A stretch of 64,000 nt of DNA from Rebecca billardiae RCC1528 (GCA_965240325.2 OZ251240.1:1426001-1490000), one strand, 5' to 3'; numbered from the stretch's first letter, positions 1,196 through 59,337 are shown. The notes: a model not told the origin generated them from the sequence alone. Translations and numbers: made by a program.

Positions 1196-4100
1196 ATGAG
1201 CCACCCGTTCGACAACCATCTGGCCCACTGGGAGCTGGACAAGTACCTCAACCAGATAACGGCCGGAATGGTGGACGCTCTGGGGGACCAACCGCCGCCG
1301 CTCCAAGCTGATGAGGCTCCTCCTCGCGGAGGCGCGGCGCAAGCCGACGCGCCCGTGCCGCCCGTGCCGGCCCCGCCGACGTGGGGGGACACGCAGCTGC
1401 GTACGTGGTTGGTCGGTATCCTCTGGCCGGAGGTGATCGATCGGATGGTCGAGCAACGGCCAGAGGTGCTCCTCGCCGCTGAGTACGCATACCAGCGGGA
1501 GATCTGTCAGCGGCTGCAGCAGCAGCGGCAGCAGCTGGAATTGCTGCGGCAGCAGGCGCAGCAGGAGGAGCGGGTCCAGCAGCTGGCGCAGGAGGTCCGG
1601 CGGCTCCAGCAGAGTTGGCAATCCATGGTCCAGCTCGTCCGCACCGACCGGGTCGTGTACGCCTTGCAGGCGCTTGATCCCGCACAGGCGCAGCCGCCTG
1701 CGCCTGTGGAGGTGAACCCGCCCGCGGTGCATCCGCCGGCAGCTCCGGGGCCGGTCGGCGACTGCGCCGGTGTCCCGGCAGCTCTCGAGCCCGCTGTGAG
1801 CACGGGCGGCGCAGCTGGCCCCAGCAGTGCCGGTGGCGGTGCGGTGATCGCAGCGGTGCCGAGCGTCGCCGCCGCGGCGCCAAGCGGCCTCGCCGCGGCG
1901 TCGCAGGCCATCCCGCCTTCTCGGGCCGTCGATCATTCGTCCGGAGAGGGCCAATTCCGCACAAAAGTCCTCAAGGTGTTCAGGAAGGCGGCAAAGGAGT
2001 ACTGCGCGCACCTGGCGGCGCAGTCGCGCCCGGTGGTCGAGGGTCGCCAGCCGCCGCCGGACTACGAGCTGTCGGAAGAGATGCAGGGCGAGTTCGACCG
2101 CCTCATCGACTTTGGCGACGACGACGGCCTGCGCACCGAGCTGCTGTCCAAGGCGCTGGTCAAGCTCAACGAGGTCTGCTGCGTCGCTTTCGCGCGGCGG
2201 AGGGCGGCAGACGGGAGCATGGGCGAGGGCCACGTCGACGAAGACCAAGTCAGCTGCGAAGCTGCCGACAAGGCCCGCGCGGCGCTGGTGAAGGCGCTGG
2301 ATGCGGCGATGAGACACCGGTACGTGTACTTTGTGTACAAGCGCAATGGCAAGTTGGCGGAGCACCACCCGCAGCAGGAGATGGACGAGGCGCGGCGCCT
2401 TGCCGAGGCGCATCGCAGCGAGCCGTGGAGAAGCACGCGCATCACGCTTAAGTCGATCGGGAGCAGGTGGGGCTGCGTGCTCAACCTGCTGCTGCTGCGG
2501 CGCGACGCCGCGTTTGCGCTCCTCGCGGCTCTGCAGAGCGCGCACCCGCCCACGCTCGGCGGCGAGCCGGTGCTGTGGGCCGTGATGCTCAAGCTGGATT
2601 GCGAGGAGGTGGTGGAGCAGGCGCGCCTCACCGCTCCCGCCGAGTGCTCCCTGGACGAGTGCGCCTCGATCGCGCGCACGCTCGTTTGCGACGTGCTGCG
2701 CCAGCCTCTCGTCGTCTTCACGAGCGCGCCCTCGGACGCAGCCGCGCCGCCCCTTGCGGTGGCAGCCACAGCCAACAGCCTCATCGCACCCGCCCAGCCG
2801 CAGGTGCGTGTGCCGCTCGGCGCGCCGCACCGCGCCCTGTGCTGCGGCGGCTGCTCGCGCCGATCTGACCCGCGCCGCCACGCACGCCACCTGCGCCGCC
2901 CAGCCCGCGCCTCAGGCAGCAAGCGCGCAGCAGCAGGGGCCCTCGCCCGGTGCGGCCTCGGCCGAAGCGGAGGAGCGCCACTCAGGCGGGGGGGTTGTGG
3001 GGCGCCTGGTGGGCTCGCTCGCCTCCTCAGACGAAGCCGCGAGCCAGCGCGCTGCTGCGAGCTCGAGTGCGCGCACCGCTACGGCCGCGGCCGCGGCTGT
3101 GCTGCCGCCGAGGCCGAGCACGGAGCCGAGTGGGCCCGCGCTGCCGCCGCAGGGGCCGAGCACGGAGCCGAGCGAGGCGGAGGTCCTCGGGCGCTTCCGT
3201 GAGGCGAGCGGGCTTGAGCCCGCCATCATCGACATGCTCGTCGACTCGATCCGGCACGATCCGGCGCAGCACGTGGACAAACCGGACCGCCAGGGCGGCG
3301 AGCTTGCGCGGTTCCTCGTCCGCGCGGCCGCGTGCGCCGATTCCGCCGCGCACGCGTCGGACGGCGCGACGGGCGCGCCGCGTGCCAGCCCGGACCTGCT
3401 CTCGGCGCTGTGCGCTCTGCCCGAGCTGGTGCGGCTGCGCGAGGCGGCGCAAAGCCGCGTGCCGCTGAGCAAGGCCGAGCTGAAGGCACTGCTGGTCGCG
3501 GCCGCGGACGCGATCATCGCCGCCACCCCGCTTGGCAGCAGCCTGCGCACGAACCTCGTGCCGGAGCTGCGCAGGCAGGCGGAGGCGATGCGCGGCCACG
3601 GCCGGGCGGCGGTCGCAATCCTCAACACGATCGGCGCGCTGCTGAGATCGCACTTCGGTGACCGGCTTGGCGGGGCGAGCGACGGCGGGGGGCGGCCGCC
3701 GTCGGAGCCCGCCAGCGCTCCCAACGCGGGCGAAGACGAGATCGAGGACCTCGATGACGACGACGACAACGACGCGGAGGGTGGCGCCGACGCCGACGCC
3801 GACGACCGCAGCGACGACCAGCCTGCCACGGGCGCGATGCCCGTGCGCGAGCAGCGCGAGCCGTCGGACTGGCCCGACACGCCCAAAGTCGTGTGCGACG
3901 CGTTCGAGCTGATCATGGGCATCGCGCCGCTGCGCCAGTCGCTGCGCTTCGAGCTCGTGCCGTTCCTGCGACGCGTCCACGACAACATCGCCAGCGGCCT
4001 GGCCCACCTCGACAGCTCCGACGGCGAGTTCTTCACCGAGCCGTGGCGGCGCATGCTGGGCGGCGGCAAGTGCCAGTCGCGCAAGACGCCGCTCAAGGTG

Positions 4101-5967
4101 TGCACGGTCGTGCTGTGCCGGATGATGGGCGTGGCGACGGTGGTGATCACCACGGGCACGAGCGGGCGCGACGACCTCTTCTCCAAGTTCTTTGAGCTGC
4201 TCGACGGCGTCCACGTGCCCTACCCCGAGCCGGCCGTCAAGCCGGGCTCGGAGGTGGAGTTCCGGTACGAGCGTGTGCCGGGCTCGCTGCCGCAGCTGGC
4301 GGAGCACAAGGGCACGCGCAGCGCGAAGACGTTCGTGATCAAGCACCCATTCAAGCAGGGCAGGCATCGCGAGTGGGTGCTCGACACGCTGGTCAGAGGC
4401 GGCTGCCTCGTCATCAACCACTCGCCGGCGGCGATCGAGAGGGCGATCGAGCTCATCCGCTCTGCAGAGCGCCAGTCGATCGACCCGCGCCTCGCAGTGA
4501 TGCGCGGCAGCCGGCCCGCGCGCAAGCTGCAGTTCGCGCTGGTGCTCGACGAGGCAGACGACTTCTACCGCACCGCCGCAGCACACCGCGAGGGGCAGTT
4601 CAGCCAGGCCATCCAGCTCGAGCGCAAGCTCGAGGAGCTCCGCGAGCTCGGCCCGATCCTGCAGCTCGAGGTGACGGCGACGCTGCTCGCGATCTACATG
4701 ATCTACAAGGAGACGGGCGCCGCGGACGAGATCGAGGGTGCCGACATCGTGTACACCGACGCGTCGGAGGAGTACGTCGGCACCGACCGCTTCAAGCCGC
4801 CAATCGACGCGACCGGCGCGCCGTGCTTCCTCCAGCCCGGCGAGCTCAAGCCGGCCAACGACTTTATCAGCCCCACCGTGCTCGAGTTTTATCACGGCGC
4901 CGCGTCGCACGAGCGCGCGCTCGTTCTGGACGCGACGAGCTCGGCGGTGACGGCCAGGGGGAACATCTTCACCAAGTCGCAACGGCTGCTGCGCGAGGTG
5001 CCGCGCGCCATTGCCATCGTCGTCTCGGGCAGCGTGATCTGCTGGCGCACCGACGAGCCGCGCGGCGACCGCCCCTCCGACCGCAAGCTCCACGTCTTCA
5101 AAGGGCAGCAGCGCATCTTCAGCTTGATTCTCGACGAGATCGACCGGCTGTACCCGCGGCGGCCGATCTTCGTCTTCGGCTTCTCGCAGCTCGTGCGCGG
5201 GATCTCGTACCGCTCGAAGCGGCGCGTGCCATCGCACTTCGTGCTGCTGCACGGCGAGAGCATCAGCATGTGCCGCCTCGTGCAGGCCGCGGGCCGCGCG
5301 AACGGCGAGCAGCACTCGCAGCTGCGCGCAAACGGCTTTGATCACGTCGAGCTGCTCACCACCGGCCGCACCTTCGACCTGGTCAAGCAGTACCCCACGT
5401 TCCTCGAGGAGATCAAGCGGCAGATGGATCTGCACCACACCGACCTGGCCAGCGCGCTCACGCGCGGCGCGGCGAACCAGTACCTGCCCGTCGACCGCCC
5501 CATCGGGCAGAAGAAGCTCGGCCTCGACGCTCAGCAGCTCAACACGCGCCCGCCGCTGCCGGGCGAGGCGGTGGGCGCGGAGGCGGAGGATGCCAAGCTG
5601 CAGGAGGGCGGCAGGAGCGCGCTCCGCGCAGTGCTGCAGGTGCTGATCGACGGTTTGGCATTCAGCGAGGACTACGCGATGAGTGCCGCCGATGTGAGCG
5701 AGGAGATCGGCGCCAACCCGCGCCACTACGACAGCTTCTGCCACGAGGGCGAGGTGAAGGCGAGCGAGATGAACGCCGCCGACGTGCGGTCCAAGCTGGC
5801 CGCGCTCTGCGTGTCGCGCCCGCCGCGCGGCGCGCTCGTGATGAAGGAGAAGGTCGGCAGGAAGCTCGTGTACTTCGTGAACGAGTCGGTGCTTGATGCG
5901 GTGCGCGCGCCCTCGGGCGGCCAGGCAGCGCCCGGCACAGCGACGACCGGCGCGCAACCGGCCGCCA

Positions 5968-6020
<53 letters not shown>

Positions 6021-6674
6021 AGCGCGCCGGGGCCGGCTGCGGCGGCCGCCGGCGCGCCGGCCACGGCCGCGGCCGCCGCACGCTCGGCTTCACCGTCCGA
6101 CGAGCTCGACGACGACGCGGAGGATGACGCGCAGCATTTCGCGCTCTCGCAGCCGGACCCGAGCGCTCGCACCGGCCGCGCGGCCGCATTGGAGGAAGCC
6201 CGCACCGCGCAGGTCGAGGAGGACTGGATGCTCGCCCTCGCGCTCGAGGCCTCGACGCACGCCACGACGCCGGAAGCGAATGACGACGTCGAGCAGTGGG
6301 ACGAGGACCTCTCGAAGGTGCTGAAGAAGTCCCTCGAGGACCAGGCGGCGTCGCAGCGGGCGAGCGGGGCAGCGCTCGGCTCGTCAAATGCAGCAGGCCC
6401 CAGCGCTCTCAACACGTCAGCTGCTCCCGCCTCCACGTCGGCGAACCCCGCCGGCAGCGGCACGCCGCACGGCGGCAAGGCCCCTGCTCGCGACAGTACG
6501 CCGCAGCTCAAGCGCTCGAACTCGACCGCCGAGCTTGAGCAACGCCGGGAGGCGAAGCGCGCTCGCGGAAAGCGCAGGAGCCAGTCGCAGCGGAACGGCG
6601 AATCAACATGGTCCGACGCCGCGATGGAGTACCAGGCGGCGCTCATCCGCGGCGATGCCATCGATTTGACATAA
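1196..6674 (+). CDS. ~1790-aa SF2 helicase-like protein (Z1-associated type) with winged-helix-like region, two UIM-like motifs and terminal SIM; exons 1196-2803, 2904-6674
   Basis: A GT-AG intron (2804-2903) joins ORF 134..3202 to ORF 2754..6674 in frame. Motifs: GGGKCQSRKT, LVLDEADD, EVTATLL, YVGTDRF, FGFSQLVRGISY, LVQAAGRANG; EEDWMLALALEAS, DEDLSKVLKKSLED; DAIDLT-stop. Confidence 0.75.
5968..6020 (+). repeat. (GCCGAC)n coding repeat (Ala-Asp)
   Basis: About 8 consecutive gccgac units inside the helicase-like CDS. Confidence 0.9.
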
Positions 6675-6697: not shown

Positions 6698-7320
6698 AGG
6701 GCCAGGTTCCCCAGCATCAAGCGCAGCATCTACAGCAGCCCGCCGGCGGGTCGGGCTGCGACGTCGACTAGAACCTCATCCGCTTCATCGCCCAGAGCCA
6801 CTAGGCGGCGTGCTCGCTCTCCAAGCCCCTCTTCAGTCTTCTGGGCTGTGGGCAGCCTTCTGCAGCTGCGTGTCGCCAGGCCGCCGGCGGCGCGCGGCGA
6901 CGCGTACGACGACCTCATCCTCATCCAGGCGCCCACGCGGGCGCCCGGGGGCGACAGCCGCGGCTGTCGCCTCCGCAGCTGCTCGCCGCTAGGTCACGGC
7001 GGGCGCCGACATCGACTACGACCTCACCCTCATCCAAGTGCTCCAGAAGGCGCTCGGCCGCGGCGGCATCTGCCGTCGCCGCCGCGTGCCCCAGGCCGAG
7101 GCGGTGCTTCCGTAACTAGGGGGGCAGGGCTGCGGGTGGCGCACTGCCTGACCTGGTCGGAACGCGCGGACTACGCGCCATTCGTCTCATTACTACATCA
7201 TCATCTTTGTGTCTGCTGCGCACGCTCTCATCATGATCATCAGCCTATATATATATATAATATGACTACTATACGCCTGCTGCCCGTTGCATACTACGTA
7301 CGACTAGCTACGCGCCGTTA
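6698..7320 (+). repeat. Dispersed repeat copy A; probable decayed retroelement 3' end
   Basis: gggccaggttccccagcatcaagc...ctgacctgg aligns by eye with 8216-8660; the tail ccgttgcatac resembles those at 37320 and 37775. Confidence 0.7.
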
Positions 7321-8215: not shown

Positions 8216-8874
<659 letters not shown>

Positions 8875-10613
8875 ACGCAGCTGGCGACGCCAGGGCCCTG
8901 CCGATGATGATTGATGAGGCTGTGCCCACGTGGTACCGAGCAGCACCACGAGCAGTGTGAGCTGCTGGTCGTGGTCAATGTATGTATCATAATGGGATCG
9001 TTGATCAGACGAGTGGCGCGTGTCCGCAGTGGGAGTGGCCGGCTCGGTGATCCTCGTTGAGGCACTCACTGTGGTCTGGACCCGCATGGCGCTGTCCGCG
9101 CGCCCACTGATGAACTACAGGCCTCTGGCTGGCAGGACCGGCAAGCCAGACAGACAGACAGACAGGGGCGGGAAGGGCGGGCCAAACAAAGCAGCTGCTG
9201 GTCGTGGCAATGCGCGGCTCGGGCGTGCGGCGGTAGGCGCGCAGCCGAGCGGCTTGCTGAGACGAGTTGGGCATCCTCTGCTGGAGGTCGAGGCGATAGG
9301 TGTCTCGGGCGCGCAGCTGTTGTGCGCTGCCGAGTCCTACCTCGCGCGGATCGAGGAGCGAGGTGCGCGCCGATGATGCCCGCTGAATGCCCCCTTTTGG
9401 GGCTCCGACGAGGCGGCAAGAGCCAGAGCAGCTCGCCTTGCAACGAAGTGGAATGGCTCGGGGGCGCCCGAGAAGCCACTCTCACTCCAGGTGATGCAGC
9501 AGCCAGCCGTGTACCCGTAGAAGGTTCATGACGAATTCTGCGAGCTGGGTGCAACAGAGTAAGAGGCCACACGGCGAGCCCCGCCGTCGCGCAGCTCGTA
9601 CACACTCAGTTATTGTACCAATAACACCACATATATATAGTCCCTCACAAGTTTAAGCCTCCCGACATTGTTCGCCATATCAGCGCAGCAAAGCAGCGGC
9701 GCGCCACCATACCAGGGGCGTACTTGGCCCACTCCACTGCCGTGCACATGAGGTGCGCCCGGACCCGATTGCTCGAGTCCTCGCAAATAGGCGTGGCTGT
9801 GCATCCTGGGTTGACGTTTGGTACCTGGCGGCCGGCGAGCTCGACTGGCGGCGAGCAGACCTGCCTGCGTGCCGCCGGCTGTCGGCAGCCTCCGTGCGCT
9901 GAGCCGCGCGCCGCGCGGTGCGTGTGCGACGTAGCTCCGCCCACGACACGCATGCACCCTCGCGCCGCGCCGCCAGCTTGGCGCTGCCGTCAGCCAGAGC
10001 CGATCGAGTGCATGCCCGAGCCTGCTCCGAGAGCATCAATATGGGCTGCGTGTGGCAGCACTGCGTAGCGGGCGGGAGAGTTGACTCACGTGCTGACTTG
10101 TTTATCTCCATGCCGCGCGGCGCTGACCATAGACGCATCAGGCAGCGCGCGCGTGTGAACGACAGATCCGCCTTGCTGATCATCAGACCAGCTGAGTGCC
10201 AAGGAACAAGTTGGGCTGCCCGTGTCAGGTGATCCGCGTCGACGCGTTGCATAGCGCAGCAGACGGCAACAGTATCAACAAGGACAGGCACACGCGCAGC
10301 ATCAGTGCCGCTTCCTCCGTGCACGATGCCGATGTGCGCTTGCGGCAATCGGCCCGGCCAAGCTGACATTCGGCTCGCACAGCGCCGCTCTGACCGATGA
10401 CGCGAAGCGAGCGCCCAAGGAGCAGGCTTGACGGACGAAGAGATGACGCATGCGGTAGTGATCTGTCACTAGCGCGTGCGTGACTAGCGCGCGAGGCGCC
10501 AAGATGCGCGTTCAGCGCGCGCAACCGCGGCGAACGTCGCTTCCCTGCGGGCTCACCGCCCCGGCCGGTCCGCCGGCAGAGCGCCGGCACACCCCGCGCA
10601 CGCGCGAACCGTA

Positions 10614-45961: not shown

Positions 45962-47703
45962 ATGGGCGGCGGCACGGGCCCCGACGGCGCGGACCCGCCG
46001 GGCGGGGCGCCGACGGAGGACCCCGCGGCTGCGCCGACCCCCTCAGTGGCCGCGGCCACGTTCACACCCGCCGACGGCGGCTCGCGCCAGCGCGGCTTCT
46101 ACTCGGAGAAGCTCGACCCCGAGTACGTCGCCAAGGCGCTCGCGAGCTCGCCGAAGCGCGCGAAGGGCGGCGGCGGCGGCGCGCGCCCCGGCTTCGTGTC
46201 GAAGGCGGCGGGCGCGCACCCCGCCGGCGCGCTCCAGGGCGCGCGGCGGCAGGTCGTCCCCAAGGCGAGCACGTTTGTGTCGGCGCCGGAGGACGAGGGC
46301 GCGCTGCGGCGCAAGGCCGCGCTCGGCCTCGGCGTCGACGCGCGCGGCGCGCGCGACGTCGAGCCGCCGTCGAAGGCGCTCGAGCCGAAGGTGCTCGTGC
46401 CCTTCAACCCGGGCCCGGGCAAGACCCCGCGCCAGATCATGATCGAGCGGCAGAAGCGCCTCTTTGCGCAGCAGGACATCCAGCAGCTGCTGCTCGCCGA
46501 GGGCGTCGACGCGTGCGCCGCCGAGCCGGAGGGCGCGCTGCCGCTCGAGCTGTTCGACGACACGGAGTTCGAGTCGCGGCCGCCGGAGGAGTGGATCGAG
46601 CTCGCGCGCGACGACGCGAGCGGCGAGACGCGCCACGTCCCCGCCACCTGCCTGCACCGCGACGAGTCGACGCGCGAGGGCCGGTGGCGGCCGTGCCAGG
46701 TGCTCGCGTACGACGGCGGTGCGGCGCTCTTCGACGTGCGCGTGCGCGAGGGGCGCGACGCGGAGTGGGAGGGGCTGCGGCTGCCGCGCATCGCGGTGCT
46801 GTTCGCCGCCGAGGACCCCTTCGTCTTCGCGCGCCGCGTCGCCGCCGCGCACAAGGGCCGCGCCTCCGCCGAGGCGCTGCTGCGGTACGAGCTGTGCGTC
46901 GACTCGATGCCAAGCGACGACGTGTCCTCGCTCGAGAAGGAGCGCGTCTCGCGGATGCTCGCGCTGGCGCTGAACACGGCGCGGCTGCAGGAGCGGCAGA
47001 TGAACGCGTCCGCGCTGCTCAACGAGGTCAACGTCGAGTACGCCCGCGCGATGTGCGCCATCATCTTCGACCGGCTCGCCGACGCGTCGGCGGCGGCCGA
47101 CGCGGCCGCGCCGGACGAGGAGGGGCGGCGCCGCATGCGCCAGGTGTCCATCTTCTCGCAGATCGAGGTGCCGCCGAAGCCGGCGAGGCCGGCGGTGCCG
47201 TGGAAGGCGACGGTGGAGGTCCCCGAGCACGACGTCGCCGAGCAGTCCCGCGCCTTCGCCTTCGCCACCCTCCTCTCGCAGCGCGAGGTGATCTCGGCGC
47301 TGATGCGCGTGCGCGCCGAGTGCCTCAAGGTGCAGGGGATGGCTCTGGTCGCGGTCGGCTTCGCAAAGTCGGTGCGGCTGGAGGAGTTCGAGCAGGCGCA
47401 GCAGCAGGCGCTCTCGGCGACGGCGACGCACCTCAAGGACGCGTGGATCCCCGCGCTCAAGTCGGGCATCCGCTCCAACCTCAAGGACATCGGCAAGGGC
47501 TGGTTCAACCTGCTCGAGACGGACGAGCGCGTGTACGCGATGAGCAAGCTGCGCCGCCTGCTCGCGACCGTCAAGCTGATGATGCAGGACTCGGTGGTGT
47601 ACCTGGCGGAGGAGTCGCTCGAGGCGTACGCCGCGTTCATCGACTCGCGCACCGCCTTCCACGTCGACGTGCGCTCCGTCTCCGACGTGCGCGTCACGCC
47701 GCT

Positions 47704-47739
<36 letters not shown>

Positions 47740-50700
47740 GCCGCTCGCCGACCGGCCGCCGCCGCTCTTCATGCTCGACATGGTGGTGAAGGACGGCGCG
47801 GTGGGCTGGCGGCAGCAGCCGGGCGCGTTCTCGGACGTGGTGATGGGCTCGTTCCGCAAGGCCGTCGACGCGTGCCTCGGCATCCCGCAGCTCGAGAAGG
47901 CGGTGATGGAGGGCCTCTTCTGGTCACACACGCCCACGCTCGTCACCCTCTCCAAGCACGAGGGCGTGCCGCCCGCCAAGGAGCGGCAGCTGCTCGGCGC
48001 GCTGGCGCGCGCGCAGCCGGCGCTCGAGGCGTACCTCGCGCAGTACGAGCCGTACGCCGCGTTCATCGCGCTCGACGTCGCCGCGCACCTCGACGAGTGG
48101 GACGCGCGCGCGGACGACGGCGCGCCGCTGCGCTCGGTGAGCGAGATCAAGGCGGCGGTGCGCGAGCACGCCGCCGCCGCGGACGAGGCGGAGGCGACGA
48201 TCCCGGCGGAGGTGGACCTCGGGCTGTTCGTCGTCACCGCGACGAGCGTCTCGCAGTTCGTCGCCGAGAAGCACCGCGAGCTCGCCAAGTCGCTCCTCCA
48301 GCTCGTCACCTCGCGCGTGCGCGCGGGCGCGCAGGAGCTGCACCGCGCGTTTGACGGCGTCGCCGGCACGCTCAACCGGCGGCCGCGCAACATCGAGGAG
48401 GTGGCGGAGCTGGAGGAGTACATGACGAAGGTGCCGGAGCTGCTGGAGGAGCTGCGCGTGCAGATCGACGGCGTGATGCGCGACCAGGCCGTGCTCGACG
48501 AGTTCGACACCTCGCTCCCCGACGCCGACTTCCGCGCGATGTGGGCGTCGATCGCGTGGCCCAAGAAGATTGAGGAGCGCATCGCCGAGGTGGTCGCCGA
48601 GTGCGTGACGAGCCGGGAGAACTTCGAGTCGGCGATGCTCGGCGACCAGGACGCGTTCGCGAAGGAGCTCGAGCAGCTCGAGCGCGTGGTCAACACCTTC
48701 GGCACGCGGCACACCGACCTCGCCAAGGTGCGCGAGGTCGCGGCGGACGTGGTGCGCATCCAGGAGCAGCTCAAGGGCTGCGAGACGAAGAAGCAGCAGT
48801 TCAACTCGAGGGAGGCGCTGTTCGGCCGGCCGGTGACGGAGTACGCGCAGCTGGCGAAGGTGGTGAAGCAGTTCGAGCCGTACGCCACGCTCTGGTCCAC
48901 CTCCGCCGCGTGGCTCTCGTGGCACGCCGAGTGGCTCACCTGCCCGTTCACGCGGCTCGACCCCGAGCGCATGCGCAAGGACCTCGAGGGCGCGACCAAG
49001 GCGATCGCAAAGTCGGTCAAGGTGTTCGCGGAGACGGCGCACCTGAACGAGATCTCGCGGACGATCCGCGACCAGATCGCCGAGTTCATGCCGCACATGC
49101 CGCTCATCGAGGCCCTGCGCAACCCCGGCATGCGCGAGCGCCACTGGGACAAGATCTCCGAGGTGGTGGGCAAGAAGATTGTCGTTGACGAGGCGTTCAC
49201 GCTCACCAAGATGCAGGGCATGGAGCTCGAGGCGCACGAGGAGCCGATCGTGCGCGAGTGCGACATCGCGGGGAAGGAGTTCCAGATCGAGGAGTCGCTC
49301 GACACGATGGAGGCCGCGTGGGCCGACGTCCACCTCGAGATCGTCGCGTACCGCGAGACCAAGACGTACGTGATGCGAGGCTTTGACGAGGTGCAGCAGC
49401 AGCTCGACGACCACATCGTGATGACGCAGACGATGGCCTTCTCGCCGTACAAGAAGGCGCACGCGGAGCGGATCGAGGCGTGGGAGGCGACGCTGAAGAA
49501 CATGTCCGACATCTTCGAGGAGTGGATCAAGGTGCAGCGCGCGTGGATGTACCTCGAGCCCATCTTCTCCTCCGAGGACATCATGCGCCAGCTGCCGGCC
49601 GAGGGCAAGCGCTTTGAGAAGGTCGACGTCAAGTGGCGGCGCGCGCTCGGCGAGGCGCACGACGCGCCGCACGCGCTGACGTTCTGCCGGAAGCGCGACC
49701 TGCTCGCGACGTTCCGCGAGGGCAACGTCCTCCTCGACCAGGTGCAGAAGGGCCTGAGCGACTACCTCGAGACCAAGCGGCAGGGCTTCTCGCGCTTCTA
49801 CTTTTTATCGAACGACGAGCTGCTCGAGATCCTCTCGCAGACCAAGGACCCGCGCGCGGTGCAGCCGCACCTGAAGAAGTGCTTCGAGAACATCAACGTG
49901 ATCGAGTTCCGCGCGGACCTCGAGATGGTCGGCATGTACTCCGGCGAGAAGGAGTACATCCCCTTCGAGTACGCGTCCAAGAAAGAGCCGCTCTACCCGC
50001 ACGGCAACGTGGAGGACTGGATGACGCGCGTCGAGCAGACGATGAAGGCGACGATCCAGCACCAGGTGTACTCGGCGGCGCTGGACTACAAGCAGCAGAA
50101 GCGCACCGAGTGGGTCAAGTCGTGGCCCGGCCAGATCATCCTCGCCGGCGCGGGCATCTACTGGTCCGACGAGACGGGCGCCGCGCTGCGCGAGCGCGGG
50201 CTCGCCGGCCTGACCGAGTACGCCGCCTACTACCACGGCGCGCTCATGGACCTGACCGAGCTGGTGCGCGGCGAGCTGACGAAGCTGCAGCGGATGTCGC
50301 TGGGCGCGCTGATCACGCTCGACGTGCACGCGCGCGACGTCCTCGAGTCGATGGTCACGCACGAGGTCTCCGAGGAGACCGACTTCAAGTGGATCTCGCA
50401 GCTGCGGTACGCCATCCCCGAGTGGGAGACGCCCGACTGCCGCGCGCTCGTCATCCAGGTGGACTCGACGTTCGACTACGGGAACGAGTACCTGGGGAAC
50501 ACGATGCGGCTGGTGGTCACGCCGCTCACCGACCGCATCTACCTCACGCTCACCGGCGCGCTCTCGATGACGCTCGGCGGCGCGCCCGCCGGGCCGGCGG
50601 GCACGGGCAAGACGGAGACGACCAAGGACCTCGCCAAGGCGCTCGCCAAGCAGTGCGTCGTGTTCAACTGCCAGGAGGGGCTGGACTACCTGGCGATGGG

Positions 50701-53700
50701 CAAGTTCTTCAAGGGGCTCGCCATGTCCGGCGCGTGGGCCTGCTTCGACGAGTTCAACCGCATCGACATCGAGGTCCTCTCCGTGATCGCGCAGCAGCTC
50801 TCGACGATCCGCACGGCGATGCTCGCGCACGCGCCGCGCTTCGAGTTCGAGGGCGGCGAGATCTCGCTCGACGCGACGAACGCGGTGTTCATCACGATGA
50901 ACCCGGGGTACGCGGGGCGCACCGAGCTGCCCGACAACCTCAAGGCGCTCTTCCGCCCCGTCGCGTGCATGGTGCCCGACTACGCGCTGATCGGCGAGAT
51001 CCGGCTCTACTCGTTTGGGTACCGCGACGCGCGCCGGCTCGCGCGCAAGATGGTCGCCACGTTCCGCCTCTCGAGCGAGCAGCTCTCGTCGCAGGACCAC
51101 TACGACTTTGGGATGCGCGCGGTGAACACGGTGATCCAGGCCGCCGGGCTCATGCGCCGCGACTTCCCCGAGATGGAGGAGGACCTGCTGCTGCTGCGCT
51201 CGCTCGGCGACTCGAACCGGCCCAAGTTTCTGGCGGAGGACATTGTGCTCTTCAACGGCATCATCTCCGACCTCTTCCCCGGCGCGGAGCTGCCCGCGCC
51301 GGACTACGGCGAGCTGCTGCCGGCGATCGAGGCGGCGCTCGAGGCGCTCGGGCTGCAGCGCGTCGACGCGTTCGTCGCCAAGTGCATCCAGCTGTACGAG
51401 GTGACCGTGCTGCGGCACGGGCTGATGCTGGTCGGCCCGACCGGCGGCGGCAAGTCGGCCAACAAGGAGGTGCTCGCGCGCGCGCTCTCGTCGCTCGAGC
51501 ACCTCGACAAGTTCAACCGCGTGCGGATCTCGCAGTGCAACCCCAAGTCGATCACGATGGGCCAGCTCTACGGCGAGTTCGACGAGAACACGCACGAGTG
51601 GACCGACGGCATCCTGTGCACGCTGTACCGCAACTGCGTGAAGGAGTTCTCCGAGGCGGGGCGCGAGGACCGGCAGTGGCTTGTCTTCGACGGCCCGGTG
51701 GACGCGCTGTGGATCGAGTCGATGAACACGGTGCTCGACGACAACCGGAAGCTGTGCCTCGTCTCGGGCGAGATCATCGCGATGACGCCGTGCATGAACA
51801 TCGTCTTCGAGGTCGAGGACCTCGCCGTCGCCTCGCCCGCCACCGTCTCGCGCGTGGGCATCATCTACATGGAGCCGCTGTCGTGCGTCGGCACGGCCGC
51901 GCAGACCAAGTCGTGGGCGGCGGCGCAGCCCGCGCTGCTGCAGCCGGTGATGGGGCGGATGCTCGAGCTGTGCGACGCGCTGCTCGACCGCGCGCTCGAC
52001 TTCATCCGCAAGAACGTCCGCCACTACGTCACCCCCGTGCTCAACAACCTCGTCGACTCGACGCTGCACGTGCTCGAGCGCTGCCTGGCCGACTTTGTGC
52101 CGGTCGAGGGCGTGTACGAGGTGGGCGAGGAGAAGGCCGCGCTGCTGCCCGCGACGGCGGAGCGCGCGTTCTTCTTCGCGCTCACGTGGGGCGCGGGCGG
52201 CGCGTGCAACGCCGACGGCCGCCGCCTCTTCGACGGCTGGCTCCGCCAGACCGTCGAGTCGGAGGAGCTCACCGGCGCCGCCGCGTTCCCCGAGGGCGGC
52301 GGCCTCGTGTACGACTACGCGCTCGACCTCGACACGAACGCGTGGCTGCCGTGGATGGAGACGATCCCGCCGTTCACGCTGGCGCCGACGACGCCGTTCG
52401 CCGACATCATCGTGCCGATGACCGACTCGGTGCGCTACATGTGGCTCGTCGAGCGCCTCCTCGTCGGCGGGCACCACGTGCTGTGCGTCGGCCCTACCGG
52501 CACGGGCAAGACGCTCAACGTGAAGGACAAGCTGATGACGCGCATGCCCGAGGCGTTCACGCCGGTGTTCATCAACTTCTCGGCGCAGACGACGGCGAAC
52601 CAGACGCAGGACCTGCTCGACTCGAAGCTCGAGAAGCGGCGCAAGGGCATCTACGCGCCGCCCGCGGGCAAGCGCTTCGCCGTGATGGTCGACGACGTGA
52701 ACATGCCCAAGCGCGAGACGTACGGCGCGCAGCCGCCGATCGAGCTGCTGCGCCAGTGGTTCGACCAGGCGGGCTGGTACGACCGGAAGACGCTCGAGTT
52801 CCGCAAGATCGTGGACATCGGGCTGGTCGGGTGCATGGGCCCGCCCGGCGGCGGCCGGCAGGTCGTGACCAACCGCTTCCTCCGCCACTTCAACTTCGTC
52901 GCGTTCCCCGAGCTGCAGGACGAGTCGGTCGCGACGATCCTGCGCACGATCCTCACGACGTTTGCGCACGCGCACCTGCCCGCGCAGGTGCACGGCGCGG
53001 TGGAGCCGATGGTGGGCGCGACGATCGAGGTGTACTCGACGATCCTGAAGGAGCTCCTCCCCACCCCCGCCAAGTCGCACTACACCTTCAACCTGCGCGA
53101 CATGGCCTCGGTCATGCAGGGCTGCCTGAGCGCAGACCCGAAGGAGATGCTGTCGCCCAACGACCTGATCGCGCTGTGGGTGCACGAGAACGAGCGCGTG
53201 TACTGCGACCGGCTGGTGTCGATGGAGGACAAGCACTGGTACGACGCGCTCGTGCGCCGCGTGGTGGGCGCGCGCTTCGGCGTGCCCTACGCCGACGTCG
53301 TGCCCGACGGCGCGCTCCTCCTCTTCGGCGACTTCATGGTGCCGGGCGCCGACCCGCGCGCGTACAACCGGATCGCCGACCGCAAGGGGCTCGTGCGCGT
53401 GGTCGAGGAGTACCTCGAGGACTACAACGCGGCGAACACGAAGAAGATGGCGCTGGTGATGTTCATCGACGCGATCACGCACGTCGCGCGCCTCTCGCGC
53501 GTGCTGCGCCAGCCCGGCGGCAACGCGCTGCTGCTCGGCGTCGGCGGCTCGGGCCGGCAGTCGCTCACGCGGCTCGCCGGCTTCATGCAGGAGATGGACG
53601 TCTTCCAGATCGTGATCTCCAAGAACTACGGGCCGGCGGAGTGGCGCGACGACATCAAGCGGCTGCTCTTCACGACGGGCGAGGAGGGCAAGCCCACGCT

Positions 53701-56700
53701 CTTCCTCTTCTCCGACACGCAGATCATCGCCGAGTCCTTCCTCGAGGACATCAACAACATCCTGAACACAGGCGAGGTGCCCAACCTGTTTGACGACAAC
53801 GACCACAACCGGATCCTCGCCGCGATGCGGCCCGTCTGCATCGCGGAGGGGCTGCCGCAGACGAAGATCGCGATGTACTCCAAGTTCATCAAGCGCGTGC
53901 TCGCGCACATCCACCTCGTCATCTGCATGTCGCCGCTCGGCGAGGTCTTCCGCACGCGGCTGCGCAACTTCCCCTCGCTCGTGAACAACTGCACGATCGA
54001 CTGGTTCCTGCCGTGGCCGGACGACGCGCTCAAGGACGTCGCGCGCGACGCGTTCGAGCCGATCGCGTCGCTGAGCGGCGAGGAGAAGGAGGCGATGACG
54101 CTGATGGCGGGGCAGATCCACCTCTCCGTCGAGAAGGCCTCGACCACCATGCTCGCCGAGCTCTCGCGGTACAACTACGTGACGCCCACGTCGTACCTCG
54201 AGCTGCTGCGCACGTACCGCGCGCTGCTCGGCTCCAAGCAGACCGAGCTGGCGACCGCGAAGAAGCGGCTGGTGAAGGGGCTGGAGAAGCTGGCGACGAC
54301 GGAGACGGACGTGGCGCAGCTGCAGACGCAGCTCGCCGAGATGCAGCCCGTGCTCATCAAGACCGCCGCCGACGTCGAGGAGATGATGGCGCAGATCCAG
54401 AAGGACAAGGCGGCGGCGGACGAGACGCGCACGGTCGTCGTGCGCGAGGAGGCGATCGCGTCGTCCAAGGCCGAGGAGTGCCAGGGGATCAAGGACTCGG
54501 CGGAGAAGGACCTGGCGGAGGCGCTCCCCGCGCTGGACGAGGCGGTGCAGTGCCTCCGCGACCTCAAGCTCTCCGACATCTCCGAGGTCGCCAAGTACGC
54601 CAACCCGCCGGGCGGCGTGAAGCTGGTCGTCGAGGCGATCTGCGTGATCCGCAACATCCCGCCCAAGATGGAGACGGCGTCCGACGGCAAGGGCAAGGTG
54701 GCCAACTACTGGGAGCCGGGGAAGAAGATGCTGAACGACGCGAAGGGGCTGCTCGACGCGATGTTCCAGTTCGACAAGGACAACATCCCCGAGCGCACCG
54801 TCTCGCGCATCGAGCCGTACATGGTCGACCCCAACTTCGAGCCGAAGAAGATCGAGTCGGTCTCCAAGTCGTGCAAGGCGATGTGCCAGTGGGTGCGCGC
54901 GATGTACACGTACCACCACGTGGCGAAGAACGTGGAGCCGAAGCGGCGCGCGCTGAAGGCGGCGCAGGAGGAGCTCGACGTGCTCACGGACAACCTGAAC
55001 AAGCTGCGCGCCGCGCTCAAGGAGGTCGAGGACAAGATCGCCGAGCTCGAGTTCTCGTTCAACCAGTCGGTCGCCAAGAAGGAGTCGCTGCAGCGGCAGG
55101 TCGACGACGCGACCGTCAAGATGGACCGCGCGCAGCGGCTGCTCGGCGGGCTGGGCGGCGAGAAGGTGCGGTGGCAGGAGACGGTGCAGCGCCTCTCCGA
55201 CCTCGAGACCTCGCTCGTCGGCGACGTCGTCATCGCCGCCGGCTCGGTCGCGTACCTCGGCCCGTTCACGGCGGCGTACCGCGCCGACCTGTGCGCGACG
55301 TGGCGCTCGCAGCTCGCCGAGCTGCGCGTGCCGTTCACCGAGGGCGCGACGCTGTTCACCACGATGAACGACGCGGTGAAGATGCGCGCGTGGACCATCG
55401 CCGGCCTGCCCACCGACGCGATCTCGATGGAGAACGGCCTCATCCTCTCGGCCGCGCGCCGCTGGCCGCTCATGATCGACCCGCAGGGGCAGGCGAACAA
55501 GTGGGCCAAGAACATGGAGAAGGAGCACCAGCTCGAGGTGATCAAGCTGTCGGACAAGGACTTCTTGCGCACGCTCGAGAACGCGGTGCGCTTCGGCAAG
55601 CCCGTCGTGCTCGAGAACATCCTCGAGGAGCTCGAGCCCGCGCTCGAGCCCATCCTGCTCAAGCAGACGTTCAAGCAGCAGGGCTCGGAGGTGATCAAGA
55701 TTGGCGAGAACATCATCCCGTACCACGCCGACTTCCGCTTCTACATGACGACCAAGCTGTCGAACCCGCACTACCAGCCCGAGGCGTCGGTGAAGGTGAC
55801 GCTGCTCAACTTCACGATCACGCAGGAGGGGCTGGAGGACCAGCTGCTCGGCATCGCCGTCGCGAAGGAGCGGCCCGACCTCGAGGAGACGAAGAACAAC
55901 CTCGTGCTCTCGAACGCGGCGATGCAGAAGCAGCTCAAGGAGATCGAGGACGAGATCCTCAAGCTGCTCTCGGAGGCGTCGGGCGACATCCTGGACGACG
56001 AGCAGCTGATCCACACGCTCGCGCAGTCCAAGGTCACCTCCGACGAGATCAACGTCAAGGTCGCCGAGGCGCGCACCACCGAGAAGATGATTGACGAGAC
56101 GCGCGAGGAGTACCGGCCGTGCGCGTTCCGCGCGGCGTTGCTCTTCTTCTGCGTCTCCGACATGGGGCGCGTCGACCCGATGTACCAGTACTCGCTGCCG
56201 TGGTTCGTCGCGCTGTTCACGCGCGCGATCGAGGACTCGGAGCAGTCCGACGAGATCGCCACGCGCCTCAAGACGCTCAACGACTACTTCACCTTCTCGC
56301 TGTACGAGAACATCTGCCGCTCGCTCTTTGAGGTGCACAAGCTGCTCTTCTCGTTCACCGTCTGCATCAAGGTGCTGATGGGCGACTCGATGATCGACCA
56401 CGAGGAGTGGCGCTTCCTGCTCGCCGGCACGGCGCAGGGCCAGCTCTCCGACGCGCCCAACCCCGCGCCCGAGTGGATCACCGCGCAGATCTGGACGGCC
56501 GTGCGCGCGCTCGCGCTGCTGCCCGCGTTCAACGACTTCGCGGACTCGTTTGTGGACTGCCTCGCCGAGTGGCGCGGCTACTTCGACGAGATGGAGGCGC
56601 ACCGCGCGAAGCTGCCCGCGCCGTGGGACGAGCGGCTCTCGTCGTTCCAGAAGCTGCTCGTGCTGCGCTGCGTGCGCGGCGACAAGGTCGTCCCCGGCTT

Positions 56701-59337
56701 CCAGGACTTTGTCTCCGAGCAGATTGGCCAGCGCTTCATCGAGCCGCCGCCGTTCGACCTGGCCGCGTCCTACAAGGAGTCGACGTACCTCGTGCCGCTC
56801 GTGTTCGTGCTCTCGGCGGGCGCGGACCCGATGGAGCACGTCGTCGAGTTCGCGGCGGAGATGAAGATGTCCAAGAAGTTCGCCGCCATCTCGCTCGGCC
56901 AGGGGCAGGGGCCCATCGCCGAGAAGATGATGCTGCAGTCGATGGAGCGCGGCGCGTGGGTGATGCTGCAGAACTGCCACCTCGCCATCTCGTGGATGCA
57001 CCGGCTCGAGGCCATCGTCGAGCAGTACGACGTGGACACGATGCACAAGGACTACCGGCTCTGGCTCACCTCGATGCCCTCGCGCCACTTCCCCGTCTCC
57101 ATCCTGCAGAACTCCGCCAAGATGACCAACGAGCCGCCGACCGGCGTCAAGATGAACCTGATGGGCTCCTACATGCCGATGACGGACGAGTACCTGAGCA
57201 AGTCGAGCAAGCCGACCGAGTTCAAGAAGCTGCTCTTCGGGCTGTGCTTCTTCCACGCGCTCGTGCAGGACCGGCGCAAGTTCGGCCCGATCGGCTTCAA
57301 CATCCGGTACGAGTTCACCACCTCCGACCTCAAGTGCTCCATGCTGCAGCTCGAGGCCTTCCTCGAGAAGTACGAGCACGTGCCGTACCGCGTGCTCGAG
57401 CACCTCACCGGCCACATCAACTACGGCGGCCGCATCACCGACGACTGGGACCGCCGGCTGGTGATGACGATGCTCGCGACGTTCATGGACGAGCGGATCC
57501 TGGACGACGCGTACGAGCTCGCGCCGGGCGAGCTCTACCGCTCGCCCCCCGTCGGCGCGCGCGCCGACTACCTCAAGCACATCTCGGCCATGCCGCACAA
57601 CCCGCACCCGTCCATGTTTGGGCTGCACGAGAACGCAGACATCGCGTGCGCGCAGGCGGAGACGAACGCGATGTGCGAGACGCTGCTCTCGCTGCAGGCG
57701 AAGGTGTCGGGCGGGAAGGGCAAGTCGAGGGACGAGATCCTCGCCGAGACGGCCAAGGGCATCCTCGACCGCGCCTTCAAGATGTTCGACATCGAGGCGG
57801 TGCGCGCGCTGCTGCTGCTGCTCGCCGCGCGAGCGCGAGCGCGAGCGCGCGCGCGCAAACATGCTCGCACGCGCGCGCGAGCGGTGCGGGAGAGCCGGGA
57901 GGGAGGGAGGGAGGGAGCGGCGGGGCGGGCGGGCGGGGCGCGCGGCGTGCGGAACGGGCGAGGGCGGGGCGAGGGCCGGGCGCCGACCGAGGGCGAGCGC
58001 AGGCCCGCGCGAGCGCGCGAGCTCACTGCCCTCTCCACGCGGCCTTCTCGGCACGCGCCGCGCGCGCCCGCGGCTGCCGCGCGACACCCACCCGCGCACG
58101 CACAGGTGGTGGCTGCGTACCCGCTCGTGTACTCCGAGTCGATGAACACGGTGCTCACGCAGGAGTGCAAGCGCTTCAACGGGCTGATCAGCGTGCTCAA
58201 CCGCTCCCTGCAGGTCCGAGCCCCGCGCCCCCGCCCGCCCTCGCCGAGCGCGCCGCCGCCGACGGCCGTGCGCCGCCGCCGAGCGCCGCGCGGGCCGCGG
58301 CGGCGCGCTCACCCGTGCCCCGCGCCGCGCCGCCCCGCGCCGCGCCGCCCGCCCTCCACCCCGCGCACCGCGCGCAGGAGCTGATCAAGGCGCTCAAGGG
58401 CCTGGTCGTCATGTCCGAGGAGCTCGAGGCGATGGCGACCTCGCTGTTCAACAACCAGGTGCCTTCCCTCTGGGCGGACAAGGCGTACCCGTCGCTCAAG
58501 CCGCTGAGCGCGTGGGTGCCCGACCTGCAGCGGCGCATCACCTTCCTCAAGAGCTGGATCGCCGACGGCACGCCCGCCGCCTTCTGGATCTCGGGCTTCT
58601 TCTTCCCGCAGGTGCGCGCCGCGCGGCGCGCGCGCGCGAGCGACGCGGAGCGGCGCGCTGAGCTGAGCCGAGCCGAGCCGAGCCGCCACGCGCGCGCGGC
58701 CCCGACGCGCGCGCGCGCGCAGGCCTTCCTGACGGGCACGATGCAAAACTACGCGCGCAAGCACGTGATCTCGATCGACACGATCTCGTGGGCGTACGAG
58801 ATGGTCGAGGTCGAGCCGGACAAGATCAGCTCCAAGCCCGAGGACGGGTGCTACATCCACGGCCTCTTCCTCGAGGGCGCGCGCTGGAACGCAGACACGC
58901 ACGCGCTCGACGAGTCGCGGCCAAAGCTGCTCTTCGAGGAGTTCCCCGTGATCTGGCTCAAGCCGGAGGCGGACCGCGAAAAGCCGACCGAGGGTGCGGC
59001 GCGCGCGCGCCCGCGCGCGTCCGCGCGCGCGCCGTGCCGCGGCGCGCGCGAGCGGCCGAGAGGGCGTCGGCGCGCGCCGGGCGCTGACGCGGCGCGCGCG
59101 CGCGCGTGCGCCCGCCCCCTCGGCCACGCGTGTGCAGGCATCTACATCTGCCCCGTGTACAAGACGCTCACCAGGGCAGGCACGCTGTCGACCACGGGGC
59201 ACTCGACCAACTTCGTCCTCTACGTCGAGCTGCCCTCGCGCGAGCCGTGCTCGGGCATGTACTCGCAGTACGTGGAGACGTACTCGGCGCACTGGATAAA
59301 GCGCGCCGTCGCCCTCTTCTGCAGCCTGAACTACTGA
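45962..59337 (+). CDS. DNAH1: Axonemal inner-arm dynein heavy chain, DNAH1-like; exons 45962-57799, 58106-58213, 58378-58611, 58723-58993, 59138-59337
   Basis: P-loops GPAGTGKT, GPTGGGKS, GPTGTGKT, GVGGSGRQ; coiled-coil stalk; C-terminal CPVYKT...HWIKRAVAL; N-terminal PGKTPRQIMIERQKR typical of the DNAH1 class. Four GT-AG introns keep frame. Confidence 0.93.

Follow-up and report, generated by a model that had tools for sequence, protein, structure and literature searches.

Motors of the DEAD-Z1 type, a group of superfamily 2 (SF2) ATPases, serve in bacterial restriction and defence systems, as H.CglI / N.NgoAVII do (Toliusis et al. 2018, PMC5861437; Iyer et al. 2008, PMC2292703). They are defined by a Gln in Walker A and a short QxxR motif VI (DThhQXuRhFG), and further by an extended loop directly behind motif II, a helical insertion with a His/His motif where motif IV would lie, and a match to the profile PF10593 (PMC5861437; PMC2292703). 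Here we compare with these motors a helicase-like gene found at 1196-6674 in a stretch of Rebecca billardiae RCC1528 DNA (GCA_965240325.2 OZ251240.1:1426001-1490000); this whole stretch of 64,000 nucleotides is referred to as the window. A first-pass annotation, made from the sequence alone, had taken the gene for a eukaryotic, intron-containing homologue of Z1-associated SF2 helicases fused to reader motifs for ubiquitin and for the small ubiquitin-like modifier (SUMO). Our analysis assigns the encoded protein to a eukaryotic family of SF2 helicase-like ATPases that is undescribed and patchy in its distribution.

The window has a GC content of ~70%, and its plus strand carries an open reading frame (ORF) at 2754-6674, 1306 codons in frame 0 with a TAA stop at 6672-6674. 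Between ~3150 and 6600 the GC content was 0.84-0.98 at codon position 3 and 0.39-0.64 at position 2, a signature which together with the homologues described below marks this ORF as genuine coding DNA. The motif series on which the first-pass annotation was built was found complete, in frame 0 of the plus strand and where it had been placed: Walker A GKCQSRKT (4065-4088), Walker B LVLDEAD (4539-4559), motif III VTAT (4671-4682), a Tyr motif EEYVG (4767-4781), motif V FGFSQLVRGISY (5175-5210) and motif VI LVQAAGR (5277-5297), followed by the strand pair of a winged helix (5835-5882). These motif columns are invariant or nearly so both in the profile alignment of 17 close homologues (A1) and in the wider-family alignment (A3), which excludes a chance occurrence.

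AlphaFold modelling of the 687-residue core (predicted local distance difference test, pLDDT, 77; predicted template modelling score, pTM, 0.76) returned two RecA-like domains with a helical lid before them and a winged helix behind, and the second RecA-like domain, or C-core, modelled alone (311 residues) reached a pLDDT of 87.8 and a pTM of 0.87. On the plus strand the conserved part of the protein opens with an N-terminal region (3171-3839; alignment A6), with which homology to P0001-P0004 begins and that includes the start motif of the homologues, helical segments and an acidic EDxIEDLD stretch. Next comes the lid (3840-4031; helices 16-26, 29-34 and 39-58, pLDDT 84-92), which is conserved in A1, and then the first RecA-like domain, or N-core (4032-4631), with Walker A, the Walker B DEAD and a disordered loop after DEAD. 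The C-core (4632-5564) begins with an extra beta/loop elaboration and contains motif III, the EYVG Tyr motif and motifs V and VI, and it is succeeded by a C-terminal winged-helix domain (5571-5900; model residues 578-687, pLDDT 86-96) and a disordered tail (5901-6671). The conserved unit consists of the N-terminal helical region, the two RecA-like domains and the winged helix; regions past the winged helix could not be aligned between relatives.

In the core model Walker A lies in a canonical strand-loop-helix (strand 71-76, P-loop, helix 83-95), and SF2 motifs I, II, III, V and VI occur in order where an SF2 fold would place them, without variation in A1 and A3; motif I deviates from the SF2 pattern by an Arg for Gly. 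Comparison with PDB representatives by VIA-align matched ~350 residues to Mfd (Z 13.1), RecG (12.9), FANCM (12.8) and INO80 (12.1), while Foldseek against the PDB gave RecQ, Mfd and Prp43 at E ~1e-7 and >300 helicase matches at E<=1e-3. Because the AlphaFold core and the helicase matches of both VIA-align and Foldseek agree, we regard the SF2 assignment of the predicted fold as secure, and the claim of an SF2 helicase-like ATPase was upheld. The winged-helix-like segment seen in the first pass was likewise recovered in the core model as a three-helix bundle with a beta-hairpin wing, and core residues 537-687 resembled ArsR (VIA-align Z 9.3, 101 aligned residues). A language-model feature match to the GREB1-type circularly permuted helicase was rejected, as the motif order here is canonical.

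A word-indexed protein search yielded 17 unnamed homologues at 38-55% identity (E 1e-61 to 1e-219), among them proteins of two haptophytes, Pavlova gyrans and Pavlovales sp. CCMP2436. Searching the A1 profile against 1.84 billion cluster representatives extended the family to 599 representatives at E<=1e-3, including 167 at E<=1e-30, and wider members from named organisms include L1JZC2 of Guillardia theta and a Batrachochytrium salamandrivorans protein. Across the family the motifs of the RecA-like domains read G.TQSGK[TS] (I; QSRKT in the window), DEAD..YRT (II), SAT/TAT (III), FGYS.L.RGISYRS..RVPSH (V) and VQAAGR (VI). The consensus of the wider family is similar, with G.TQSGK[TS], DE[AC]D...R, SAT, a conserved Tyr, LLDxTxPRV, PIFVFG[YF]S.M.RG.SFRS..RVPTH and QA.GRATFNG. 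Two orthologues (P0004 and P0018) derive from MMETSP transcriptomes and are thus transcribed.

No member of this family has a name in the databases searched. The window protein, whole and in pieces, had no significant match in Pfam (E<=10), PADLOC (E<=1) or PDB sequences (E<=10), where the top rows were an unrelated small heat-shock protein and PIX at E 0.05-0.24; what Pfam returned was noise below its thresholds. Scans of sets of 18, 55 and 53 relatives with Pfam, PADLOC, NCBIfam and PHROGs gave only weak DEAD matches and noise; in the set of 55 wider members Pfam reported 12 proteins with weak DEAD matches and, as accessory domains, B-box, Tudor and OTU. Profiles A1 and A3 likewise found only noise among PDB sequences. 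With so many comparisons made, we take a single MzaB match at E 0.015 in the relatives' scans for a chance result.

The gene is single-copy within the window, and contigs of relatives carry ordinary eukaryotic genes (PGK, GAPDH, Mog1, mL59 and a PA-domain protein); we therefore consider it a cellular gene. The eukaryotic nature proposed in the first pass is borne out by these ordinary nuclear neighbours, and an origin as a transposon or integrated virus was rejected in view of the single copy and of neighbours that are ordinary and differ between relatives. On one metagenomic contig P0075, which belongs to the family, and a 979-aa C5 DNA methyltransferase (PF00145) are arranged head-to-head, the two occupying L007:102-3041 (-) and 3799-6228 (+). 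This restriction-like pairing is a single instance, and none of the other examined loci showed it.

Within the plus-strand tail of the window protein we located a (DA)n repeat (5973-6020), two helices resembling ubiquitin-interacting motifs (UIMs; 6216-6254 and 6300-6341), a KRxR basic patch resembling a nuclear localization signal (NLS; 6543-6578) and, directly before the TAA, an AIDLT motif of SUMO-interaction motif (SIM) type (6657-6671). Cores of the [AV]IDLT type are the classical SUMO-interaction motif of PIAS and RNF4, whose pattern is [VI][VI]DLT with acidic residues behind it. Related forms occur in the tails of relatives as VIDLT (P0001, P0003), AIDLTDD (P0006), IIDCDLTSDDD (P0002) and VVDCDLTDDDD together with IVIDLR (P0004), often with an acidic run behind them. 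The pattern psi-psi-D-psi-[TSD] was present in 6 of 13 tails where 0.10 were expected, and none of 5000 shuffles reached six. Judged on sequence, the element has the features of a SIM, namely a hydrophobic core, an acidic or Ser/Thr flank, a disordered setting and conservation in orthologues. KRxR patches were found in 12 of the 13 tails. Both the C-terminal SIM and the NLS-like patch of the first-pass annotation thus recur among relatives, and SUMO reading by the tail is plausible and conserved.

The companion claim of a ubiquitin reader fared differently. Against the Pfam UIM model (PF02809) the first helix scored 13.4 bits, below the cut-off of 21, and the second gave no match at all; relatives keep only an upstream E[ML]ERAR element and have lost the Ala...Ser signature, either by replacement of the Ser or with the whole motif. 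Of the two reader motifs only the SIM is therefore conserved in orthologues, and because the UIM match is sub-threshold and its signature lost in relatives, ubiquitin reading by the window protein is not supported; one half of the refuting outcome named in the first pass thus came about. Other members carry other modules: a RING-H2 finger (P0012, P0013), a J-domain-like HPNKW segment (P0011, P0014), ankyrin repeats in a 2253-aa member (P0091, L004:1895-8656), and OTU, B-box and Tudor domains elsewhere in the family. Together with the SIM, the RING, OTU, B-box, Tudor and ankyrin modules point to ubiquitin/SUMO or chromatin signalling as a likely regulatory theme.

How near this family stands to the DEAD-Z1 motors depends on which defining feature is considered. 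The Walker A Gln is present in the family consensus G.TQSGK[TS] and in the window (QSRKT), and behind a conserved DEADDFYRT the model has a loop of low confidence (core residues 245-254), a possible counterpart of the H.CglI loop at 163-172. Motif VI, [LIVM].QA.GR(ATFNG), has the canonical QxxGR spacing rather than the short Z1 QxxR register. From motif III to motif V neither A1 nor A3 has a His column that is invariant or nearly so, and the sole invariant His stands after motif V (RVPSH). PF10593 itself had no match at E<=10 in the window protein and 17 relatives, nor at E<=0.01 in 55 wider members, and no Z1-type PADLOC or NCBIfam match appeared among the scanned proteins. In searches for Z1 sequences, tblastn against phages and plasmids returned no match or an irrelevant TrbI, and the A2 word search, its words drawn from non-homologous N-termini, returned the query alone.

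Predicted shape is nearer to Z1. In ESM Atlas comparisons, where both sides are predicted models, the PF10593 cluster was the best Pfam-named match to whole core and C-core alike: its TM with the whole core was 0.54 (470 residues), where RecG and Mfd clusters reached 0.44-0.45 (~373 residues), and with the C-core 0.61 (249 residues), where RecG/Helicase_C clusters reached 0.51-0.52 (206-213 residues). The language-model feature scores of Z1, 0.89 with the whole core and 0.84 with the C-core, serve as leads only. The Z1 affinity proposed in the first pass therefore stands in part, for the Walker A Gln and the shape of core and C-core, and fails for PF10593, the motif VI register and the His pair. 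The protein is not a member of the DEAD-Z1 family as defined; it may work like a DEAD-Z1 motor, and a distant kinship is possible.

The nearest shapes overall were three unnamed Nucleocytoviricota clusters of the ESM Atlas (C-core TM by query 0.64-0.69, ~250 of 311 residues), and the language-model feature score for Nucleocytoviricota was 0.96. Foldseek of the C-core against BFVD was led by A0A0N9QIR2 of CeV-01B (E 5e-8), A0A1C9C5C9 of Heterosigma akashiwo virus 01 (HaV01; 1e-7) and M1I2R9 (4e-6), with the next match after these three algal-virus proteins at 6e-4; for the whole core HaV01 came first (E 3e-11). CeV infects a haptophyte. The viral proteins are themselves unstudied and therefore add no functional information. 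The suspected link to giant viruses is confirmed in so far as their proteins are the nearest structural kin, and the idea of a gene domesticated from prokaryotes or viruses is not borne out by sequence. Two family profiles found no tblastn-confirmable relative in IMG/VR, and none of 25 pattern matches in GTDB (one genome per bacterial or archaeal species) was confirmed; since these searches of bacteria, archaea and IMG/VR found no sequence relative, no direction of transfer can be assigned.

The Arg in Walker A, singled out in the first pass, is real and conserved. The window protein, P0005, P0009 and P0042 form a clade with 99% support in which the motif always reads QSRKT or QARKT, and across this clade the Walker A Lys-Thr, DEAD, motifs III and V and the Gln and Arg of motif VI are invariant at ~40% identity (A1). 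The family consensus at this position is Gly (QSGK[TS]); Arg recurs in other branches, where Lys, Gln and Asn also occur. The residue before the Lys is in fact the variable one (Gly, Arg, Lys, Gln or Asn) in an otherwise conserved Walker A, an unusual tolerance for a P-loop.

We hypothesize that the protein is a nuclear SF2 translocase recruited through SUMO and acting on nucleic acid, probably duplex DNA, and give this reading a probability of about 0.5. The KRxR patches would bring the protein into the nucleus, where the tail may dock on SUMO-modified chromatin or repair proteins through its [AV]IDLT motif. The winged helix would help to hold nucleic acid while ATP hydrolysis drives translocation along it. 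Duplex DNA is proposed as the most likely track because the core resembles Mfd, RecG, FANCM and INO80. Translocation could then remodel, strip or evict protein-DNA complexes, as Mfd, RecG, FANCM or Uls1 do, the last being a SIM-bearing Swi2/Snf2 ATPase. Several points count against this hypothesis. The structural Z scores of DNA translocases (12-13) and of DEAH RNA helicases (~10-11) differ too little to decide the substrate, and an Arg for Gly before the Lys would disturb phosphate binding in most P-loop nucleoside triphosphatases. In addition, the SIM core of the window protein has just two strong hydrophobic residues (A-I-D-L-T), and the SIM and NLS calls both depend on short linear motifs.

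That the protein is an RNA helicase or a ribonucleoprotein remodeller instead of a DNA translocase appears unlikely. The C-core alone does match DEAH-box proteins best among PDB entries (Prp22, Prp16, Prp43 and HrpA, Z 10.5-10.8), and Prp43 and Prp22 are among the top Foldseek matches, but the whole core favours the double-stranded DNA translocases Mfd, RecG, FANCM and INO80 at Z 12-13, albeit by small differences in Z, and the core model has a winged helix after the core and no OB-fold or ratchet domain of the DEAH type. A further alternative would be a catalytically dead clade in which the window protein acts as a SUMO-binding scaffold or clamp, as the fixation of Arg in a well-supported clade against the consensus QSGK[TS] might be read. 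This seems to us very doubtful, given that the other catalytic residues are invariant, a pattern unexpected after loss of catalysis, and that other branches tolerate Lys, Gln or Asn at the same position. Because all remaining catalytic residues are held invariant, we favour a working ATPase with an unusual P-loop, a preference drawn from sequence conservation.

The first-pass annotation had gone further in proposing a captured bacterial or viral DEAD-Z1 translocase which ubiquitin, through two UIMs, and SUMO, through a SIM, would recruit to repair, silencing or defence against viruses. In that full form the proposal is improbable. In its favour are the Walker A Gln as in DEAD-Z1 (PMC5861437), the disordered loop directly after DEAD, an invariant Tyr between the cores that resembles the Y motif of restriction motors, the rank of PF10593 among Pfam-named shapes with its feature score of 0.89, the algal giant-virus proteins as nearest shapes, and the one homologue head-to-head with a C5 DNA methyltransferase. 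It has to contend with the lack of any PF10593, PADLOC or NCBIfam Z1-type match in the scanned proteins, a QxxGR motif VI and no conserved His pair between motifs III and V, searches of bacteria, archaea and IMG/VR that found no sequence relative, and UIMs that are sub-threshold and unconserved. A broader and distinctly speculative version, which we also think improbable, would unite this family and the algal giant-virus helicases as a eukaryote/virus branch of DEAD-Z1 motors, coupled to SUMO or ubiquitin in nuclear surveillance against giant viruses or mobile DNA. If it were true, the family would be a remnant of prokaryote-style, translocation-dependent restriction in eukaryotic nuclei, contested by virus-encoded copies.

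Whichever function the SUMO-recruited translocase proposed here may serve, SF2 motors are very well studied, and yet this family of several hundred clusters is without a Pfam model, a name or a literature. Its members occur in haptophytes, cryptophytes and a chytrid, and they have structural counterparts in viruses of such algae. The atypical P-loop, with Arg, Lys, Gln or Asn for a supposedly required Gly under purifying selection, offers a testable case. The variable tails (SIM, RING, OTU, B-box, Tudor, ankyrin) suggest that the motor has been plugged repeatedly into SUMO/ubiquitin and chromatin signalling. Should the structural kinship with DEAD-Z1 reflect descent, the family would connect the restriction machinery of prokaryotes with giant viruses and with the biology of the eukaryotic nucleus.

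The 5' end of the gene allows more than one model. Upstream of the conserved part, a frame-2 coding signature extends over 1350-2790 by codon-position GC, and ATG 1196 is the first ATG past a divergent J-domain gene. A putative exon 1 on the plus strand (1196-2803) would encode a 536-aa lineage-specific N-terminal extension that includes a Gln-rich, coiled-coil-like stretch. Comparison with family members, language-model features and the word-indexed protein search gave no relative of it, Pfam had no match, and the long N-terminus of P0003 was not similar. A putative GT-AG intron of 100 nt (2804-2903, plus strand) would join it to the ORF. Alternative acceptors lie at 2915, 2918 and 3152, and all four introns from 2804 have a length of 1 modulo 3 and lead from frame 2 to frame 0. 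The intron of the first-pass annotation is accordingly plausible in its GT..AG ends and in joining the frames, while 2804-2915, 2804-2918 and 2804-3152 fit equally well.

It is also possible, if the lesser of our expectations, that 1196-2803 is a separate gene or an exon joined otherwise and that the helicase starts near 3171-3234. Most homologues have their start exactly at the motif encoded by 3171-3240, 170-290 residues ahead of the core, one of them being P0018, whose ORF comes from a transcript and is marked as complete. Exon 1 has no homologue, and codon periodicity is absent over 2790-3150. On the other side, frame 0 has no in-frame ATG upstream of 3234, which lies ~20 residues inside the conserved start motif, so that some upstream exon is needed. 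Frame 2 is free of stops to 3202 and past 2803 encodes an Arg/Gly-rich sequence that looks out of frame, and several GT-AG pairs connect both frames cleanly.

The divergent gene occupies 1-885 on the minus strand; its product has a J-domain with an HPD motif, behind which come stretches rich in Gly/Arg or acidic residues and a segment that resembles TPRs. It starts at ~885 and reads leftwards, leaving ~310 bp before ATG 1196, and because of this divergence the interval 886-1195 is probably a shared bidirectional promoter. Downstream of the helicase gene the window contains two copies of a ~300-bp repeat at 90% identity (6880-7171 and 8365-8669) and (TA)n and (TG)n microsatellites at ~8700-8900. 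Farther along, a 4140-codon ORF spans 45962-58384 on the plus strand.

Compared with DEAD-Z1 motors, the protein shares the plan of a monomeric SF2 motor with two RecA-like cores, the Gln at the first Gly of the GxGKT part of Walker A, possibly the extra loop after DEAD, and a conserved Tyr that lies between the cores and resembles the Y motif of restriction motors. It also shares extra C-core elements, and for this reason Z1 models cover ~40 more residues than C-cores of the RecG type; in both a further domain of DNA-binding type stands C-terminal to the motor. It differs in PF10593, motif VI and the His/His motif as detailed above, and in the Arg before the Walker Lys in the window clade. 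Here the C-terminal domain is a winged helix, there is no operon with a partner nuclease, GHKL protein or methylase, and the family consists of eukaryotic nuclear genes with SIM, RING or OTU tails. The algal giant-virus helicase-like proteins are the best shape matches of all, but at an identity of just 12-16%. With Mfd, RecG, FANCM and the INO80/Swi2-Snf2 enzymes the protein has in common the two-domain motor geometry (Z 12-13, ~350 residues), whereas identity is 9-13%, no PDB sequence profile matches and the accessory domains are others. Uls1/Ris1 and Rad5/HLTF/SHPRH are, as functional analogues only, similar in coupling an SF2 motor to a SIM (window clade) or a RING (clade of P0012 and P0013); these enzymes are of the Swi2/Snf2 family and carry the RING inserted in the motor, whereas the family described here combines a non-Snf2 motor with modules placed in its C-terminal tail.

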